Source: Octopus bimaculoides (lineage: Eukaryota). From it: a stretch of DNA of 47,902 nucleotides. Each line of letters opens with the position of its first letter. The stretch's first letter is position 1. The stretch is taken from the NCBI RefSeq assembly GCF_001194135.2, contig NC_068991.1, positions 6,812,783 to 6,860,684 of the forward strand, in the 5' to 3' direction. Under the pieces are notes generated by a model. It was not told the DNA's origin. It did not search any database and was given only the letters and a program-made list of their open reading frames with translations. Of the stretch, positions 31,030 to 35,762 are shown one piece after another. The position numbers and the translations under genes were made by a program.

Positions 31030-32942
31030 TTAATCTTCTGAATCCTCATCACACATAAGCTCTTGTAACTCATAATCCTCATATGTCTCAGCAACAAAAT
31101 AAGGATCACAAGCATAAGTAGCATGCAGTGTAACATTTTCTAAATTTTCTCTAGATTCCGGAGACAATTTGATAAAAAATTTAGGTCCTTCAAGATTTCT
31201 TACAGTCACTTCTGATGTGCCTTCAGCTAACAATGTATCTGGATCCAAACCATCTCCCTCTGTTAGCATATTGTACTTTGATAACTTAATATGAACTTTG
31301 CCACACATACCAGTGGCGATAATTGTAATATTCCCAACTAGCTTTGGATAAATAAAATCAAAGACTGGGTTTGCTTCAACTGACACTCTAATACCTGAGA
31401 TTGTTTTGCCAAATGACAATCTTTGAATATGTTTCTCTAGATCACATGGTTTAATTCCTGTAACTTCAAAAGCTTTAATAAAAGGGGTTAGATCTTTGCC
31501 AAGGTCATAGGCAACCTTCAACATATCACAAGCCCCAGAAATGAAGTCTGTATAATAGTGCCAATATATTGTATTGGCAATGAGGAAAACTTGGTAAGTT
31601 TCTTTTATATCCATTTTTAATTCATGTACAATGTAGTAAAAAATAAAATTATAAATCCCACTTCCATAATGAACGTTCATATTTGCAGTGAAATTATCAA
31701 CATGACTTACAGATTCATTGTCTAAGGAGGGGTTTGCCATGTATCTCAATGCACCCTCTTCTTTAATGACATCGAAGCCAACAAACCAGTCAATCTCACT
31801 CATATAAGCTTCAGTGACTTCTCCTGTTATATCAGAAAACGCCTCATTTATGGATCCAGACTGGTCTTTGTAAAGCAATCCAGAGTGTTGTTCTGTGAAG
31901 CCATGAGCAAGTTCATGTCCAATTACATCTGCAACTACAAGAGGATAAACGTTTGTATCGCCATCACCAAATGAGCAATATTCCCCATCCCAAAATGCGT
32001 TTTCATAATCTATCCCATAATGAACACGCAAGATTGCTTGTTTGTTTAGTATTGAAGAATTAAACCATTCCTGAAACATCTGAGATATCATGCTACCATA
32101 ATAGAAGGCATCAAGTGCTGGTGATATGGCCGTATTAACACTGTCATTAAAACCAACATCACAAAGATAATAGATAGGATCTGTGCCATGAAAATCTTCA
32201 CTGTACCTGTTTTGCATGTCTATTACTTTTACATAATTATTTTCAAGAAAACACATTTCACCAATCTGAGTCACAAAAGCTTTGTGATTTTTCTCACTAA
32301 ATTTGTATATTCCTGATTTTTCATTACCACCAGAACCAGTCAGTACTCTGGAAATGGTATCTAAATTATTATATTTCAGCAGTATTTCTCCAGTGTTACC
32401 ATCAATAACAAATGTAGGTCGTTTAATAACTTCTTCATTTTCTATTCGATAATTTATATGGTATGCTAGTCGAGATTTGTCATTTTCATCCAGGAAAATC
32501 ATAATTTTGTATTCTGGCTGGATGCTCTTTGCATAAATTTCATCTCCTTCTGCTTTAAAAGCTATATCGAAGACATCTAATTTTGAAAGCTTTGGTTCTG
32601 CATTTGTGATATCATCTTCAATTCCTTGAATAAACGTTCCTGTTGCATCACCAGTCAAATGTCCATCTTTATCTTGTGTAACGGTTAACGAAGCATCAAA
32701 AACAGGAACACCCAAGAACTTCTCTTGTAAGCGTAAAATTTCTGTGCCTTCAGCTGTTTTGATACGGTTTGACTCTTCAACTTCTTCATACTCCTTCAAA
32801 CCAAGAAGATCTCTGACTGTTACTTCAGTTTTATCTAAATGACGCCGATGAAATGGAGATGAAGGAAGATAAATCATTCTCCTTGCTCTTTCATGAGCAT
32901 CAACACGACGAGCCGCATCAGATGTCTTTATCAGTGACAAAC
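31030..32942 (-). CDS. Exon 2 (main coding exon) of a secreted M4-family zinc metalloprotease (thermolysin/LasB elastase/vibriolysin-like prepro-enzyme)
   Basis: Uninterrupted 636-codon ORF. Motifs (ORF-track numbering): HELAH 342-346, GSINEAFSD with E366, ENAFWDG, FGDG..VYPLV, LRYMANPS, NVHYGSG. FTP-like (LRLQEKFLGVPVFD) and PepSY-like (RPTFVIDGNTGEILLKY) propeptide segments align by eye with P. aeruginosa LasB and Vibrio proteases. The frame is closed by TAA just upstream, and a pyrimidine-rich acceptor TGTTTTCATTGTTTAG|GT lies at 32943/32942. Confidence 0.96.
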
Positions 32943-33574
32943 CTAAACAATGAAAACATTACAATTATGAATAACAGAAACATCAGGATTTTTTTCTTCA
33001 AGACTGAGACTAATTTTTTGACAATACATTCACACACAGTTTATGCCTATATTTGTTTTAAAAAGAATTAAATTCCTTAACAATTTAAATATAATTATAA
33101 GCTCATAATCTATGATATATTGCTCATAAAAAAATACATCATTCTAACCTCTTTTAGTCTGGACAAATTTGTCCAAATATAAATTCAATGCATTTCAGTA
33201 ATTAATTTAATATTTGATGAAATGGGGTAGTGGTTTGTTAAGTGAATGGGTGTGGGTTTCCTTTTAGTTAAACAACAACCAACATCTGAAAGCTACAAGT
33301 TAACTGAGGTCTGTGCATTTTTGGTGTAGGATAATTTTGTTGATTTGAATGCAGTCTGGTTATATTCAATGTTCCATACAAGGACTTTTGTATTTGTTTC
33401 ATAAATTAGGGGATGGCTACTAACATTAAGCTTAAGGATTATATAATGTACAAGTATAAAGAAAGAATTAAAGAAAGAAGGACTCATTATATTGAATGTT
33501 ATCGATAACATTGGGTGTAAATAGGGGGTGCTGCAATTCAGCAGTGCCTCCACACGAGCAGCCACTGTCTTGCA

Positions 33575-34749
33575 CTTAGTGACGTGGACAAGAAAGAGGT
33601 GTGGAAAAGTTACTACGAGAAACTGTTGAATGTAGAGAAAGAATGGGTTAAAGTGAGTCTCCCAACAGAAGGGCCGACTATCCTAGTGGACAGCAGTGTG
33701 GTAGATAAGACAATTGAAAACGTATTAACCAGGAAAGCCCCTGGCCCATCCGGAATCACAGCTGAGATGCTCAAAATATCCGGAATGGTAAAATATGGGC
33801 TAGTCACCCGCATAGTTGACTAAGTCATTCAGGAAGGTGTAATAGCTAGTGACTGGTGTAGCAGCATTATTATTAGCTGATACAAGATTATGGGTGCTGC
33901 TTTAGATAGAAACAAATAGAGAGGCGGTGAGCTGGCAGAAACGTTAGGTAGATGGTCTGTTCGATTTGTAGGAAAGGTGTAGGCAGGAACTCCTTACGGT
34001 GTACCCAGTGCAAGCTATGGACACTGAAGAGGTGCAGTGGATTAATCGGAAGGTTATCAGAGAAGATAGTTTTCGTTTGTGGAAGATGCACAGGATCCAT
34101 AAAAACTTTAGAGACTCGGGAAATTGATTCTCTCAAATGCCTTGGTTGCTCATTAGAGGTAGTAGATAATTTCTGCTACTTAGGGGACCAAATTAATAGT
34201 AGGGGAGGATGCACAGAATGTGTGATAGCTAGAAAATGAATAGGATGGAGAAAATTCAGAGACCTGTTACCTCTGTTGGGCACGAAAGGTTTCTGTCTCA
34301 AAGTGAAAGGAAGATTGCATGAAGCATGTATACAGACAGCAATTCAACATATGAGTGAAACGTGGGCCCTGAATGCAGAGGACATGCGATGGTTAGAAAG
34401 GAATAAGATTAGTATACTCCGCTGGGTGTGTAATGTAAGTGTACGTTTTCGACAGAGTGCTGGTGTTTTGAAAGAGAAGTTAGACATAAGAGGAATTAGT
34501 TGCTGAATGCAAGAGAGAAGATTGCGCTGGTTTGGTCATGTGATGCGGATGAGTGTCGAGAGTTCCATAAAGAAGTGCCGATCTCTCAAAGTAGAAGGAC
34601 CACGTGGAAGCGAAAGACCCAAGAAGACATGTGAAGGACTGAAGAATGAACTCAAGACGGTGAACGTTTCAGGCGAGATGGCAAAGGACCGAGACACCTG
34701 GCGCTTTGCTGCACTCGAGAAAACCCGTACTCCGCAGCAGAAGTGTTAA
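33575..34749 (+). mobile_element. Decayed RTE-clade LINE ORF2 fragment inside the protease intron (antisense to the gene)
   Basis: KAPGPSGITAEMLK (pre-RT), DW..SII...YK..G.ALDRN..RG (RT start), FCYLGD (RT motif 7), ETWAL, RRLRWFGHVMRM...GRP-like C-terminus. Multiple stops and a large internal deletion. Confidence 0.9.
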
Positions 34750-35092
34750 GACCGGTCCCCCTGGTGAAGCACATGGTGCCTGTTGTCCCCTTAACACTCA
34801 TTCGCCTTGCAGTGAAGTTGGTACAACATATATATCTCAGATTTCCAAGAAACTCAAACAGATAAGAATGGATATCATTTGTACAGGTGAAAGAAGCCAG
34901 GTGACTGACATTTACAGTAACTATTCCCAGAGTGTGACAGCAAGAAATAATCCCTGAAAATCAGTGGCTGGTGCCCATTAATCTTTTTTTACATCAAGTC
35001 TATTGAGTCAGTTGAAAGGTGATGGTGGGACCTCACCAAGACTGCAGAGGAATGAATCGACAAAGCAGGTGAAGTTGACAAGTTGTTCACAA

Positions 35093-35240
35093 GAGAAAGA
35101 GAGAGAGAGAGAGAGAGAGAGAGAGAGAGAGAGAGAGAGAGAGAGAGAGAGAGAGAGAGAGAGAGAGAGAGAGAGAGAGAGAGAGAGAGAGAAACAGACA
35201 GAGACAGAGAGAGAGACACAGAGAGACACAGAGAGACAGA
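35093..35240. repeat. (GA)n microsatellite in the intron
   Basis: Directly visible. Confidence 0.95.
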
Positions 35241-35292
35241 GATAGTTGTTCTGACACAATCAGCTGTGAAGTAATTGTATAACTATGTAGTT

Positions 35293-35430
35293 GAGACTGG
35301 GAAACGGCACTTTGGGCTTCTGCCTTCTACTATAGCCCCTGCCCAACCAATGCCTTGCAGGAAAACATAAAGGCGGTGCTCCAGCATGGCCACAGTCAAA
35401 TGACTGAAACAAGTAAAAGAATAAAATAAT
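35293..35430 (+). mobile_element. Internally deleted SINE family B in the intron
   Basis: CTTCTACTATAGCC joined to AAAGGCGGTGCTCCAGCATGGCCACAGTCAAATGACTGAAACAAGTAAAAG. Confidence 0.75.
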
Positions 35431-35713
35431 AACCAATGAATAAACTGCAATGGTTAAGACTCATTCTTGTGCTGATGGATTCTAACTAAGGCAGCATCAT
35501 TGTGACAGATCTCATCACAAAGGAGAAACAGTTGAGGAGGATTACAAGATTGGTCAGGCAGAGAATAGTAGAGGTGCTACAATAGTCCTTAAGGCAAATC
35601 TAGCTTCTATAAAGTATTTTATGTAAGAAATGAATCAGTTGTCATCACAAGAAAATACAAAGATAAAATGCATGTAAACTTAAACAATGAAAAAATCTTG
35701 AAAATATACTTAC

Positions 35714-35762
35714 TGCCAAATAGGAGTTGCCACGAATAAAATATAACCAACAAATTCCTCAT
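35714..35762 (-). CDS. Predicted exon 1 of the M4 protease, encoding most of the signal peptide (MRNLLVIFYSWQLLFG + A)
   Basis: 49-nt exon with ATG at 35762 in GCAACCATG context, ending at a consensus donor GTAAGT (35713-35708). Phase 1 matches the acceptor (A|GT = Ser) and joins in frame to give MRNLLVIFYSWQLLFGSLSLIKTSDA-ARRV, a plausible cleavable signal peptide. Confidence 0.85.

Follow-up and report, generated by a model that had tools for sequence, protein, structure and literature searches.

An intact M4 metalloprotease gene in Octopus bimaculoides, its mollusc family and its probable bacterial origin

We analysed a 47,902-nucleotide stretch of Octopus bimaculoides DNA (hereafter the window), located on the 80.9-Mb chromosome-scale contig C11, and found that it carried a genuine, intact and host-integrated metalloprotease gene. 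Judging from its sequence and predicted structure, the product appeared to be a zinc metalloendopeptidase of MEROPS family M4, made as a secreted preproprotein and belonging to the mainly bacterial vibriolysin/pseudolysin/ProA type. The best explanation overall, which we hold with considerable confidence, was that of an intact host protease gene belonging to a mollusc-wide family that descended from a single ancient bacterial transfer. The interpretation given in a preliminary description of this DNA, which had recognised an octopus-like host, was supported overall.

Gene model, protein domains and selection

The gene occupied positions 31030-35762 of the window on the minus strand and had two coding exons, whose spliced product was identical to a 653-residue RefSeq protein (P0001, 'virulence metalloprotease [Octopus bimaculoides]'). 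Coding exon 1 (35714-35762, 49 nt) encoded the first residues of the signal peptide. It opened with the ATG at 35762, which was the upper bound given in the preliminary description, and held 16 codons plus one nucleotide (MRNLLVIFYSWQLLFG and the first base of Ser17), matching P0001 exactly together with exon 2. Coding exon 2 (31030-32942, 1,913 nt with the stop codon) carried the remaining signal peptide, the propeptide and the catalytic and PPC-like domains in one unbroken exon. Its frame, the intact ORF reported earlier (31030-32940), was uninterrupted for 636 residues and represented the sole long ORF of the window outside repeats and N; the probability of 636 open codons was approximately 8e-21 at the given base composition. 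The intron between the exons (32943-35713, 2,771 nt, phase 1, GT-AG, with donor GTAAGT and acceptor ending in TTTTCATTGTTTAG) interrupted the coding of the signal peptide. Downstream, a pattern search returned three AATAAA-type hexamers on the minus strand (30863-30993) that were candidate polyadenylation signals, located 37, 72 and 162 nt 3' of the stop.

The protein consisted of a signal peptide, an FTP/PepSY propeptide and an M4 catalytic domain, followed by a diverged PPC domain, all encoded on the minus strand. Of the FTP and PepSY parts proposed earlier for the propeptide, the FTP motif (32653-32772, residues 74-113) passed the Pfam cut-off (PF07504, 25.6 bits versus 21), whereas the PepSY-like part (32377-32586, residues 136-205) was below it (PF03413, 17 bits versus 24); the predicted propeptide nevertheless superposed on the propeptide chain of vibriolysin MCP-02 (3nqz_A) with a TM of 0.74. 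Both lobes of the catalytic domain scored above their Pfam cut-offs, in agreement with the earlier assignment, namely the N-terminal Peptidase_M4 lobe (31891-32304; PF01447, 89.7 bits), which was also aligned to pro-elastase, and the helical Peptidase_M4_C lobe (31456-31884; PF02868, 93.3 bits), which contained Y374. The zinc ligands H359 and H363 and the general base E360 were in HELAH (31903-31917), the third zinc ligand E383 in NEAFSD (31831-31848) and the catalytic H441 in NVHYGSG (31657-31677). All the M4 motifs listed in the preliminary description (GGNEKSG, ENAFWDG, HELAHGFTEQHSGLLYKDQSGSINEAFSD and NVHYGSG) were present, and H359, E360, H363, E383, Y374 and H441 were invariant in an alignment of 24 mollusc-clade sequences. 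By alignment, the conserved Asp preceding the catalytic His (Asp221 of pseudolysin) was Asn439 in the window protein, a replacement that could lower activity.

The C-terminal extension noted earlier was a diverged PPC (pre-peptidase C-terminal) beta-sandwich (31114-31425), detected by hhalign and Foldseek. Namely, the mollusc C-terminal profile aligned with the bacterial PPC profile over 101 columns (hhalign probability 98.5%, E 2.3e-15), and the C-terminal domain of the window protein matched the PPC domain 5sv5 in Foldseek with a TM of 0.71. Pfam missed this domain in the window copy because it was so diverged, and in subfamily C the Pfam PPC matches were below threshold. The AF2 model of the window protein had a mean pLDDT of 82.6. 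Its sequence contained six N-glycosylation sequons, and the C-terminal region in subfamily A had additional Cys residues.

We infer secretion, zymogen activation, activity and biological role by homology. The signal peptide, whose coding is split by the phase-1 intron, would direct the protein to the secretory pathway, and the FTP/PepSY propeptide would serve as a folding aid and inhibitor that is removed by cleavage near residue 215. The two-lobed domain of approximately 300 residues would hold zinc via H359, H363 and E383 and hydrolyse peptide bonds with E360 as the general base and with the assistance of Y374 and H441. The C-terminal beta-sandwich may be a binding module or may be lost on maturation. 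This PPC-like domain was the fastest-evolving part of the window protein. A role in digestion, venom, hatching or defence, as suggested earlier, would be conjectural; the sole hint of expression pointed to ink, through the listing of a close paralogue of the window gene in the ink proteome of another species, O. vulgaris, where A0A6P7SYD8 ('neutral protease isoform X1', 652 aa, subfamily A) was identified from one peptide and two spectra (PMC10142993, supplements).

The dN/dS check proposed in the preliminary description gave 0.34-0.47 for the window copy overall, with 0.19-0.28 in the propeptide, 0.26-0.33 in the catalytic domain and 0.8-1.3 in the PPC domain, and a rough three-way estimate for the window branch only was approximately 0.35. 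The window copy was thus under purifying selection except in its PPC domain, where the ratio was approximately 1. We considered it unlikely that this copy was a decaying or non-catalytic paralogue, a relic or pseudo-protease open only through its youth while other family members were functional. The Asn in place of the conserved Asp would fit such decay, but P0002 and P0005 had the same change, and the subfamily-A protein from the ink list was very similar to P0005 over the available stretches of sequence; the zinc ligands, E360, Y374 and H441 were all retained. The terminal branch of the window copy was the longest among the octopus subfamily-A genes (0.12 versus 0.035-0.05 in its neighbours), and its best matches in O. 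sinensis and O. vulgaris reached only 77-79% identity with no one-to-one orthologue, while subfamily B orthologues were far more alike among the listed sequences. However, the 653-codon frame was intact at a dS of approximately 0.33 from the nearest relatives, by which time a neutral copy would usually have stop codons. Broken family copies did exist in a cluster at 51.44-51.50 Mb of C11 (one truncated copy interrupted by an in-frame TGA, plus a fragment limited to the propeptide), and the PPC ratio was compatible with a relic; the low ratios on the window branch itself and within the propeptide and catalytic domain argued against it.

The mollusc family and its origin

The search for paralogues suggested earlier yielded eight family loci in the O. 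bimaculoides genome, on five chromosome-scale contigs and one smaller scaffold. Homologues were found in other octopods, an argonaut, scallops, a pearl oyster, four gastropod lineages and eukaryote-like contigs, with named matches in O. sinensis, O. vulgaris, Argonauta, Pecten, Ylistrum, Mizuhopecten, Pinctada, Pomacea, Babylonia, Haliotis, Patella and Gigantopelta. Molluscs were the only animals among the named matches in the 5.8 billion proteins searched, bar one entry flagged as contamination. As to the proposed domestication in octopus, the family was mollusc-wide rather than octopus-specific. The window gene was one lineage-specific, fast-evolving and dispersed paralogue of subfamily A, and at least two subfamilies were older than the cephalopod-bivalve split. 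The annotations of many mollusc genomes already included family genes under names such as 'elastase-like' and 'neutral protease', and our literature search found no paper describing the window gene.

An intron of the same type also occurred in other family genes. Like the window gene, the three distant octopus paralogues on C7, C103736 and C3 were interrupted after codon 16 by a phase-1 intron, and the genes of Pecten maximus had one after codon 9 or 18. In the scallop gene P0015 the phase-1 intron fell within the signal-peptide region, 10 residues before the conserved motif AA[RY][RK]VDA just as in the window gene, and P0131 possessed such an intron too. A phase-1 intron in this region was shared by octopus subfamilies A, B and C and by both of the scallop genes examined.

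A careful ML tree of 132 rows united the 25 named mollusc sequences, without exception, in a single clade of 65 rows (support 95/93) that held no named bacterium. Sixty named proteobacterial sequences made up the sister group of this clade, and the Legionella-type and thermolysin-like bacterial paralogues were placed further out, with very long outgroup branches (>3). The mean path length was 2.6 between molluscs and proteobacteria, compared with 4.2 between the proteobacterial sequences and their own distant M4 paralogues, and was 2.18 within the mollusc clade. The tree, the distances and the retention of the PPC domain were best explained by an ancient transfer from bacteria to animals, and we infer its direction and the number of transfers accordingly. 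A complete bacterial M4-PPC gene would have entered an animal ancestor once, in or before the last ancestor shared by cephalopods, bivalves and gastropods. It would then have gained an intron in the signal-peptide region, drifted to the base composition of the host and been duplicated repeatedly. The ML tree proposed in the preliminary description supported a single clade beside proteobacteria but did not fix its attachment statistically: a placement of the animal clade beside the thermolysin-like outgroups, outside all vibriolysin/pseudolysin/ProA-type bacteria, was not rejected by the AU test (delta lnL 9.1, p = 0.18), and the donor lineage cannot be named. Of the old transfer from a marine bacterium suggested earlier, the old bacterial origin stood, but the donor was not narrowable to a marine bacterium or Vibrio with a clade sister to a broad proteobacterial group.

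It seemed improbable that the mollusc subfamilies (C versus A, B and D) and the eukaryote-like groups (clade X, P0251/P0266 and P0265) acquired the gene in several independent transfers. The 65-row clade was well supported and the signal-peptide-region intron was common to octopus and scallop genes, although the base of the mollusc clade was weak (96/22) and was joined by P0265, which had no taxon name. Consistent with separate acquisitions, the eukaryote-like P0251 and P0265 kept a canonical PPC domain and a bacterial-like length of 607-648 aa as single ORFs, and P0056 and P0254 at the clade base could be bacterial, the latter being approximately 51% identical to a Shewanella enzyme.

Vertical inheritance, in which an early eukaryote or animal ancestor had an M4 peptidase that was later lost from almost all lineages other than molluscs and a few more, was already disfavoured and appeared very unlikely. 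Topology alone would accommodate such very old descent because the animal clade and the bacteria were the two sides of one branch in an unrooted tree; the AU test did not require the clade to branch within the vibriolysin-type bacteria, and the diversity within it was large. Against this, the animal proteins were much nearer to one bacterial subfamily than that subfamily was to M4 paralogues from the same genomes, and the PDB sequence scores and fold scores agreed with this closeness. Moreover, the entire architecture of a bacterial secreted protease was kept, including the PPC domain (named 'bacterial pre-peptidase C-terminal domain' in Pfam), the coding body was one exon, and molluscs were the only animals among the named matches apart from the entry flagged as contamination.

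Integration into host DNA

The gene was embedded in host sequence, as the preliminary description had claimed, with a spliceosomal intron that harboured a host repeat and with a host-like base composition. The intron repeat (33946-34769, plus strand) was antisense to the gene and had ORFs resembling a retroelement tail; a first look gave 8,577 candidates, and 40 scored copies showed 80-85% identity on many chromosomes. The earlier mention of a LINE was correct as to a dispersed host repeat, but the label was unconfirmed because Pfam found no reverse-transcriptase domain in the ORFs of this repeat. The reported microsatellites were recovered as (AG)n in the intron (35092-35242; Tandem Repeats Finder, 75.5 copies) and (AC)n at 30533-30629. 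Positions 28718-36749 were ungapped, as described, since the N runs stopped at 28717 and restarted at 36750. The earlier estimate of about one third GC agreed with exon 2 (GC 35.2%, GC3 25%); the intron had 39.8% GC and the window 38.7%, and the GC of the gene (35%) was equal to that of its flanks.

Bacterial contamination or a chimeric assembly, which might be suspected from the automatic NCBI name 'virulence metalloprotease', the 16 N gaps of the window and the Vibrio and Shewanella proteins as best non-mollusc matches, was effectively refuted by the GT-AG intron with a repeat of thousands of genomic copies in one ungapped 8-kb stretch, by the GC3 of exon 2, by the loci on several chromosome-scale contigs, by orthologues with the same intron in separately assembled genomes of other octopods and molluscs, and by an identity of only 35-40% to the closest bacterial proteins.

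Comparison with known M4 proteases

The product was closer to LasB and Vibrio enzymes than to Bacillus thermolysin, as proposed earlier. The top sequence match among solved structures was pseudolysin (LasB elastase of Pseudomonas aeruginosa; pro-elastase 8cr3, E 6.6e-82), with an alignment that ran from the propeptide to the C-terminus. The HExxH motif, the Glu ligand of NEAFSD, the Tyr, the catalytic His and the four Cys that form both pseudolysin disulfides were aligned with the octopus protein, both proteins had an FTP/PepSY-type propeptide, and the predicted octopus fold matched with a TM of 0.93-0.95. However, the catalytic domains were only about 36-37% identical, Asp221 of pseudolysin was Asn in the octopus protein, and the latter had an added C-terminal PPC-like domain beyond the pro-elastase chains, whose alignment stopped at residue 516. 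The octopus gene also differed in its eukaryotic signal-peptide exon, its intron and its N-glycosylation sequons.

Vibriolysin-type enzymes with a PPC domain (e.g. MCP-02, PDB 3nqx/3nqz, and 607-aa Vibrio/Salinivibrio proteins) had the identical domain order of signal peptide, FTP, PepSY, M4, M4_C and PPC. For the catalytic domain (TM 0.96, rmsd 1.5 A) as well as for the propeptide, MCP-02 was the closest structural match, and the PPC profiles aligned as described above. On the other hand, identity to the octopus protein was 35-38%, the PPC domain of the window copy was too diverged for Pfam, subfamily A had extra Cys in the C-terminal region, and the mollusc genes were outside every Vibrio, Shewanella and Pseudoalteromonas group in the tree.

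Legionella ProA/Msp (NF045902) was the top NCBIfam model match (E 1e-87), and its structure 6ya1 matched the octopus protein by sequence (5.3e-63) and fold. An orthologous relationship to ProA was ruled out by a score of 295 bits, far under the equivalog cut-off of 900, and by the tree, where Legionella sequences branched outside the animal clade and its sister group of 60 proteobacterial sequences taken together.

Thermolysin and bacillolysin (Bacillus-type M4) shared the family, the catalytic motifs and the two-lobed fold with the octopus protein. The thermolysin match was far weaker (E 1e-22 to 3e-31 over part of the domain), and the predicted fold superposed on thermolysin with a TM of approximately 0.79 and an rmsd of 3-4 A, compared with a TM of 0.93-0.96 and an rmsd of approximately 1.5 A for vibriolysin MCP-02, ProA and LasB.

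The protease gene and its setting in octopus DNA

The window gene (31030-35762, minus strand) was built around an open frame of 636 codons at 31030-32940. Every other long ORF in these 47.9 kb was a translation of microsatellite or N sequence, and the random occurrence of such a frame at the local base composition was estimated at ~8e-21. Among 5.8 billion proteins searched, there was a match of 100% identity, P0001 (653 aa, 'virulence metalloprotease [Octopus bimaculoides]'), on an 80.9-Mb contig; the window corresponded to G000:C11:6812783-6860684 in this 2.34-Gb assembly. The 17 extra N-terminal residues of P0001 were supplied by a 49-nt first exon at 35714-35762 on the minus strand. 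When 35762..35714 and 32942..31030 were joined, the resulting 1,962 nt were translated into P0001 letter for letter, and the upper boundary that the preliminary description had proposed for the gene, 35762, was exactly the upper coordinate of this exon. The intron (2,771 nt, minus strand) was in phase 1 and had a GTAAGT donor and a pyrimidine-rich acceptor with TTTAG. A pattern match located AATAAA hexamers 37, 72 and 162 nt past the stop codon on the same strand.

The stretch around the gene was ungapped at 28718-36749, as had been described, and exon 2 (GC 35%, GC3 25%) resembled the surrounding DNA. The intron contained an (AG)n array and a dispersed repeat of ~820 nt (33946-34769), for which there were 8,577 first-look candidates; 40 scored copies had 80-85% identity and were located on many chromosomes. 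This level of identity among genome-wide copies suggests that the repeat belongs to an old and very abundant family. Thus, the gene was physically integrated in host DNA with a spliceosomal intron. A locus that was chimeric or unlinked to host DNA had been named as one of the cases that would overturn the original proposal. Contamination or chimerism of the assembly was rejected as the source of the gene and can be excluded for practical purposes, because the stretch was ungapped, the intron carried a multi-copy host repeat, and both GC and GC3 were host-like.

A LINE had also been reported from the window. The retroelement-tail-like motif RLRWFGHVMRM was indeed present in ORFs of the intron repeat, but Pfam found no RT or other significant domain in these or in other window ORFs, and the repeat was therefore left unclassified. 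Over its whole length (1-47902), the window contained 16 N gaps and consisted mostly of di- and tetranucleotide microsatellites with translations such as THTH..., YIYI... and MYVC.... Rfam gave no match on the ungapped contig, and no further protein-coding genes were detected in the 47.9 kb.

The mollusc M4 family and selection on the window copy

Eight loci with an M4_C match were found in O. bimaculoides, and they fell into three subfamilies. Subfamily A included the window copy (C11, 6.84 Mb) and a tandem cluster at 51.44-51.50 Mb of the same contig. Subfamily B was represented on C3 (43% identity to the window copy) and subfamily C on C7, C28 and C103736 (32-33% identity). The subfamily A cluster (G000:C11:51436980-51502877; loci L002, L003, L004 and L010) was located 44.6 Mb from the window copy. 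One of its copies was full but broken by an N gap, another had a 239-N gap, and a third was truncated to 359 aa and carried an in-frame TGA; in addition, there was a fragment with the propeptide alone (51466539-51466859). In P0002, the 723-aa RefSeq 'neutral protease' of L002, the propeptide segment LGLKEYEEVEESNRIKTAEGTEVLRLQEKF... occurred twice and the gene model crossed a 1,108-N gap; the repeated segment was probably an annotation artefact. P0123, a RefSeq 'elastase' on G000:C103736, had a C-terminal extension of ~95 aa that was absent from all relatives and was probably a mis-joined exon or read-through.

Named relatives were found in cephalopods (O. sinensis, O. vulgaris and Argonauta hians), in bivalves (the scallops Pecten, Ylistrum and Mizuhopecten and the pearl oyster Pinctada) and in gastropods (Pomacea, Babylonia, several species of Haliotis, Patella and Gigantopelta), including a deposited 'metalloprotease' of H. 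discus hannai. Molluscs were the only animals among the named matches listed (the best 120-150 per list), and several relatives were located on eukaryote-like contigs. An acquisition of the M4 gene specific to octopus was rejected. All three octopus subfamilies had a phase-1 intron after codon 16, and in Pecten maximus, genes of two subfamilies had one intron each, likewise of phase 1 and within the signal-peptide region. In the gene for P0015, it was located 10 residues before the conserved motif AA[RY][RK]VDA, as in the window gene. P0009 (L021:6001-7938, ENA ERZ21867824), which was placed with octopod subfamily A in the cephalopod part of the tree (49% identity), was a single ORF that included the signal peptide and lacked the phase-1 intron. 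This could be a result of intron loss, of retrocopying, or of a later intron gain elsewhere.

The window copy might be read as a relic, that is, a decaying paralogue. Its divergence was the largest in its group, the terminal branch measuring 0.12 in the maximum-likelihood (ML) tree, and its best matches in other Octopus species reached only 77-79% identity. Pairwise dN/dS values (Nei-Gojobori) were obtained for the window copy against its relatives from O. sinensis, O. vulgaris and O. bimaculoides, with a dS of ~0.33 to the nearest ones. The ratio was 0.34-0.47 for the whole gene, which was not near 1, as well as 0.19-0.28 for the propeptide and 0.26-0.33 for the catalytic domain; in the C-terminal PPC-like domain it was 0.83-1.27. 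These values, with a rough three-way estimate of ~0.35 for its own branch alone, show purifying selection: the window copy is under constraint, yet it is the most diverged in its group.

Enzyme class, domain architecture and putative function

The window protein belongs to MEROPS family M4 (thermolysin family, gluzincins); it matched Peptidase_M4 (PF01447) with 89.7 bits (cut-off 22.4) and Peptidase_M4_C (PF02868) with 93.3 bits (cut-off 24.4) in Pfam. Its zinc site consisted of H359-E360-L-A-H363 (the HExxH motif), in which E360 is the general base, and a third ligand, E383, in N382-EAFSD. The residues H359, H363, E383, E360, Y374 and H441 aligned with pro-elastase and were invariant in 24 mollusc-clade sequences; the transition-state residues Y374 and H441 correspond to Tyr155 and His223 of pseudolysin. 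Four cysteines that aligned with pseudolysin cysteine positions were also invariant in the 24 sequences, and in pseudolysin these positions form its two disulfides. The aspartate before the catalytic histidine (D-V-H in pro-elastase; Asp221 of pseudolysin), which orients this histidine, was replaced by Asn439 in the window copy. Of the 24 aligned sequences, P0002 and P0005 also had Asn at this position, P0019 had Ser, and the remaining 20 had Asp, among them the other octopod proteins such as P0003, P0004 and P0007. Asn439 would bear on the level of activity and not on homology, Asp being an accessory rather than a defining residue.

The best sequence match among solved structures was Pseudomonas pro-elastase (6.6e-82, residues 57-516), followed by the PlM4P peptidase, Legionella ProA and the vibriolysin MCP-02 (~1e-62 to 1e-65), whereas thermolysin-type enzymes reached only 1e-22 to 3e-31. 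In bits, the pseudolysin/vibriolysin/ProA type scored 279 and thermolysin 83-112. An AlphaFold2 model of the window protein (pLDDT 82.6) had the two-lobed thermolysin fold. It was superposed on MCP-02, LasB and PlM4P with a TM of 0.93-0.96 (rmsd ~1.5-1.9 A), on ProA with 0.85-0.87 (~2.0-2.3 A), and on thermolysin with ~0.79 (3-4 A), while the propeptide part matched the MCP-02 propeptide chain with a TM of 0.74. Thus, the resemblance to LasB and Vibrio enzymes over thermolysin that had been noticed from motifs alone held in sequence scores, in fold and in the tree. The propeptide had been described as FTP plus PepSY; the FTP part was recovered by Pfam (25.6 bits, cut-off 21), but PepSY stayed under its cut-off (17 bits, cut-off 24).

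For the last 138 residues of the window copy, Pfam gave no PPC hit. The same region of the subfamily C paralogues showed repeated sub-threshold matches to PPC (PF04151; E 0.0026-0.048). A profile of 15 mollusc-clade C-termini matched one of nine bacterial PPC domains with 98.5% probability (E 2.3e-15, 101 columns), and the modelled C-terminal domain was superposed on the solved PPC domain 5sv5 with a TM of 0.71. Since both the profile-profile and the fold comparison agreed where Pfam alone gave no hit, the C-terminal extension noticed earlier is a diverged PPC domain. With this domain in place, the window protein appears to have kept the complete architecture of a bacterial secreted protease.

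By homology, the product would be a secreted zymogen that matures by removal of its propeptide and cleaves proteins with the help of zinc and a glutamate. The six N-glycosylation sequons and eight cysteines of the window protein are in keeping with an extracellular location. A0A6P7SYD8 ('neutral protease isoform X1') is listed in a shotgun proteome of ink from O. vulgaris, on the basis of one peptide and two spectra (PMC10142993). This 652-aa protein belonged to subfamily A, was close to P0005 and was a paralogue of the window copy in O. vulgaris. This is the one experimental hint at a function, and a weak one; digestion, saliva, hatching and defence are other possible roles.

Origin of the family and comparison with bacterial enzymes

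An ML tree (LG+C20 PMSF) was built from 132 rows and 457 columns. A scan of genome contigs gave close proteobacterial relatives only and no thermolysin-type outgroup, and five of the genomes in question supplied distant M4 paralogues. The named mollusc sequences, 25 in all, formed one group with 16 further rows. The surrounding animal clade of 65 rows (support 95/93) contained no named bacterium, and its sister consisted of 60 named Gamma- and Betaproteobacteria and a few others (81/91). Legionella-type proteases and distant M4 paralogues from Lysobacter, Holophagae and Legionella genomes were placed outside both. Within the mollusc group, subfamily C united cephalopods and scallops (100/100), and the A/B group had distinct cephalopod, bivalve and gastropod subclades. 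Therefore, at least two mollusc M4 lineages predate the split of cephalopods, bivalves and gastropods.

The closest non-mollusc rows in the 65-row clade were clade X (17 rows, 97/92), P0265, and the P0251/P0266 group. We examined contigs for five of these non-mollusc proteins at seven loci (ENA assemblies ERZ25767047, ERZ26052378 and ERZ25069853); the ENA analyses ERZ25071447 and ERZ21867824 also held relatives. The contigs had ~35-40% GC, were up to 7.45 Mb long and contained microsatellites and retroelement fragments. Their long-ORF share was mostly 12-34%, and the 60% of L120, the contig with P0265, was mostly microsatellite translation. These contigs look eukaryotic and are probably from animals. 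Downstream of the M4 gene on L120, there were two short PPC-like ORFs (L120:10299-10523 and L120:15772-16200), one with a weak Pfam PPC match and the other with the motif GDADLYVEKGS; each may be an isolated PPC module or part of a disrupted gene copy. One clade X cluster comprised 21 sequences at >=90% identity on a few large contigs (P0427 and P0507-P0520; 2.2 Mb and 753 kb among others), a recent and massive tandem amplification of the M4 gene. As to the taxonomy of the group that is sister to the mollusc genes, the sole clue was the label of the clade X member P0337, which came from a Siedleckia nematoides transcriptome (EukProt EP00918). The sequence may be from Siedleckia or from its annelid host. 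S. nematoides is a gregarine-like parasite of the polychaete gut.

The preliminary description had proposed an old transfer from a marine bacterium. A Vibrio donor was rejected since the tree put the animal clade inside no modern genus, and the 132-row tree indicated no donor genus at all. An attachment of the animal clade next to the outgroups, in place of the proteobacteria, was not rejected by the AU test (delta lnL 9.1, p = 0.18); the outgroup branches were long. In agreement with the ML tree, the mean path between molluscs and proteobacteria was 2.6, against 4.2 between these proteobacteria and thermolysin-like paralogues of their own. Bacterial and eukaryotic sequences could not be told apart by an index of amino-acid composition. 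We infer a transfer from four features in combination: sequence and fold both show an affinity at the level of the subfamily, the PPC architecture has been retained, the coding body is a single exon, and the family is patchily distributed among animals.

A joint account of these data can be offered only tentatively, and we consider it rather unlikely to hold in full. A single bacterial M4-PPC protease gene would have been acquired by an animal lineage prior to the divergence of the mollusc classes, and would then have gained the signal-peptide intron and radiated into several subfamilies of secreted proteases. Lineage-specific tandem bursts would have followed and produced up to 21 near-identical copies within a single genome. 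The fast-evolving octopod subfamily A may have taken on a role in ink or another external secretion, and the rapidly changing PPC domain may have retargeted the enzyme to new substrates. The transfer would be older than the split between molluscs and annelids if the non-mollusc relatives were annelids.

The M4 enzyme family is well known, as are its fold and mechanism, and M4 peptidases are textbook bacterial secreted proteases, several of them virulence factors. The mollusc classes are more than half a billion years old by the usual dating, which sets the length of this natural experiment. The window gene and its relatives were already present in RefSeq and UniProt under automatic names. Our literature search found no paper describing the mollusc M4 family or its bacterial origin, and the family is not mentioned in the text of a metazoan HGT compendium (PMC13342648). 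Intron-bearing, multi-copy and selectively maintained, the mollusc family would be a clean example of a foreign enzyme that settled in an animal secreted proteome. It would also illustrate how a prepro-enzyme of bacteria becomes suited to the secretory pathway of eukaryotes, here by way of an exon for the signal peptide, sites for glycosylation and additional cysteines, and its members are candidate enzymes in the biology of ink, saliva or hatching in cephalopods. Moreover, the names 'virulence metalloprotease', 'elastase' and 'hemagglutinin/proteinase' in mollusc annotations denote host genes, neither contamination nor orthologues of vertebrate elastase. The window protein scored 295 bits against the Legionella ProA equivalog NF045902, under its curated cut-off of 900, so orthology to ProA was rejected and the octopus protease is a relative of ProA rather than its orthologue.
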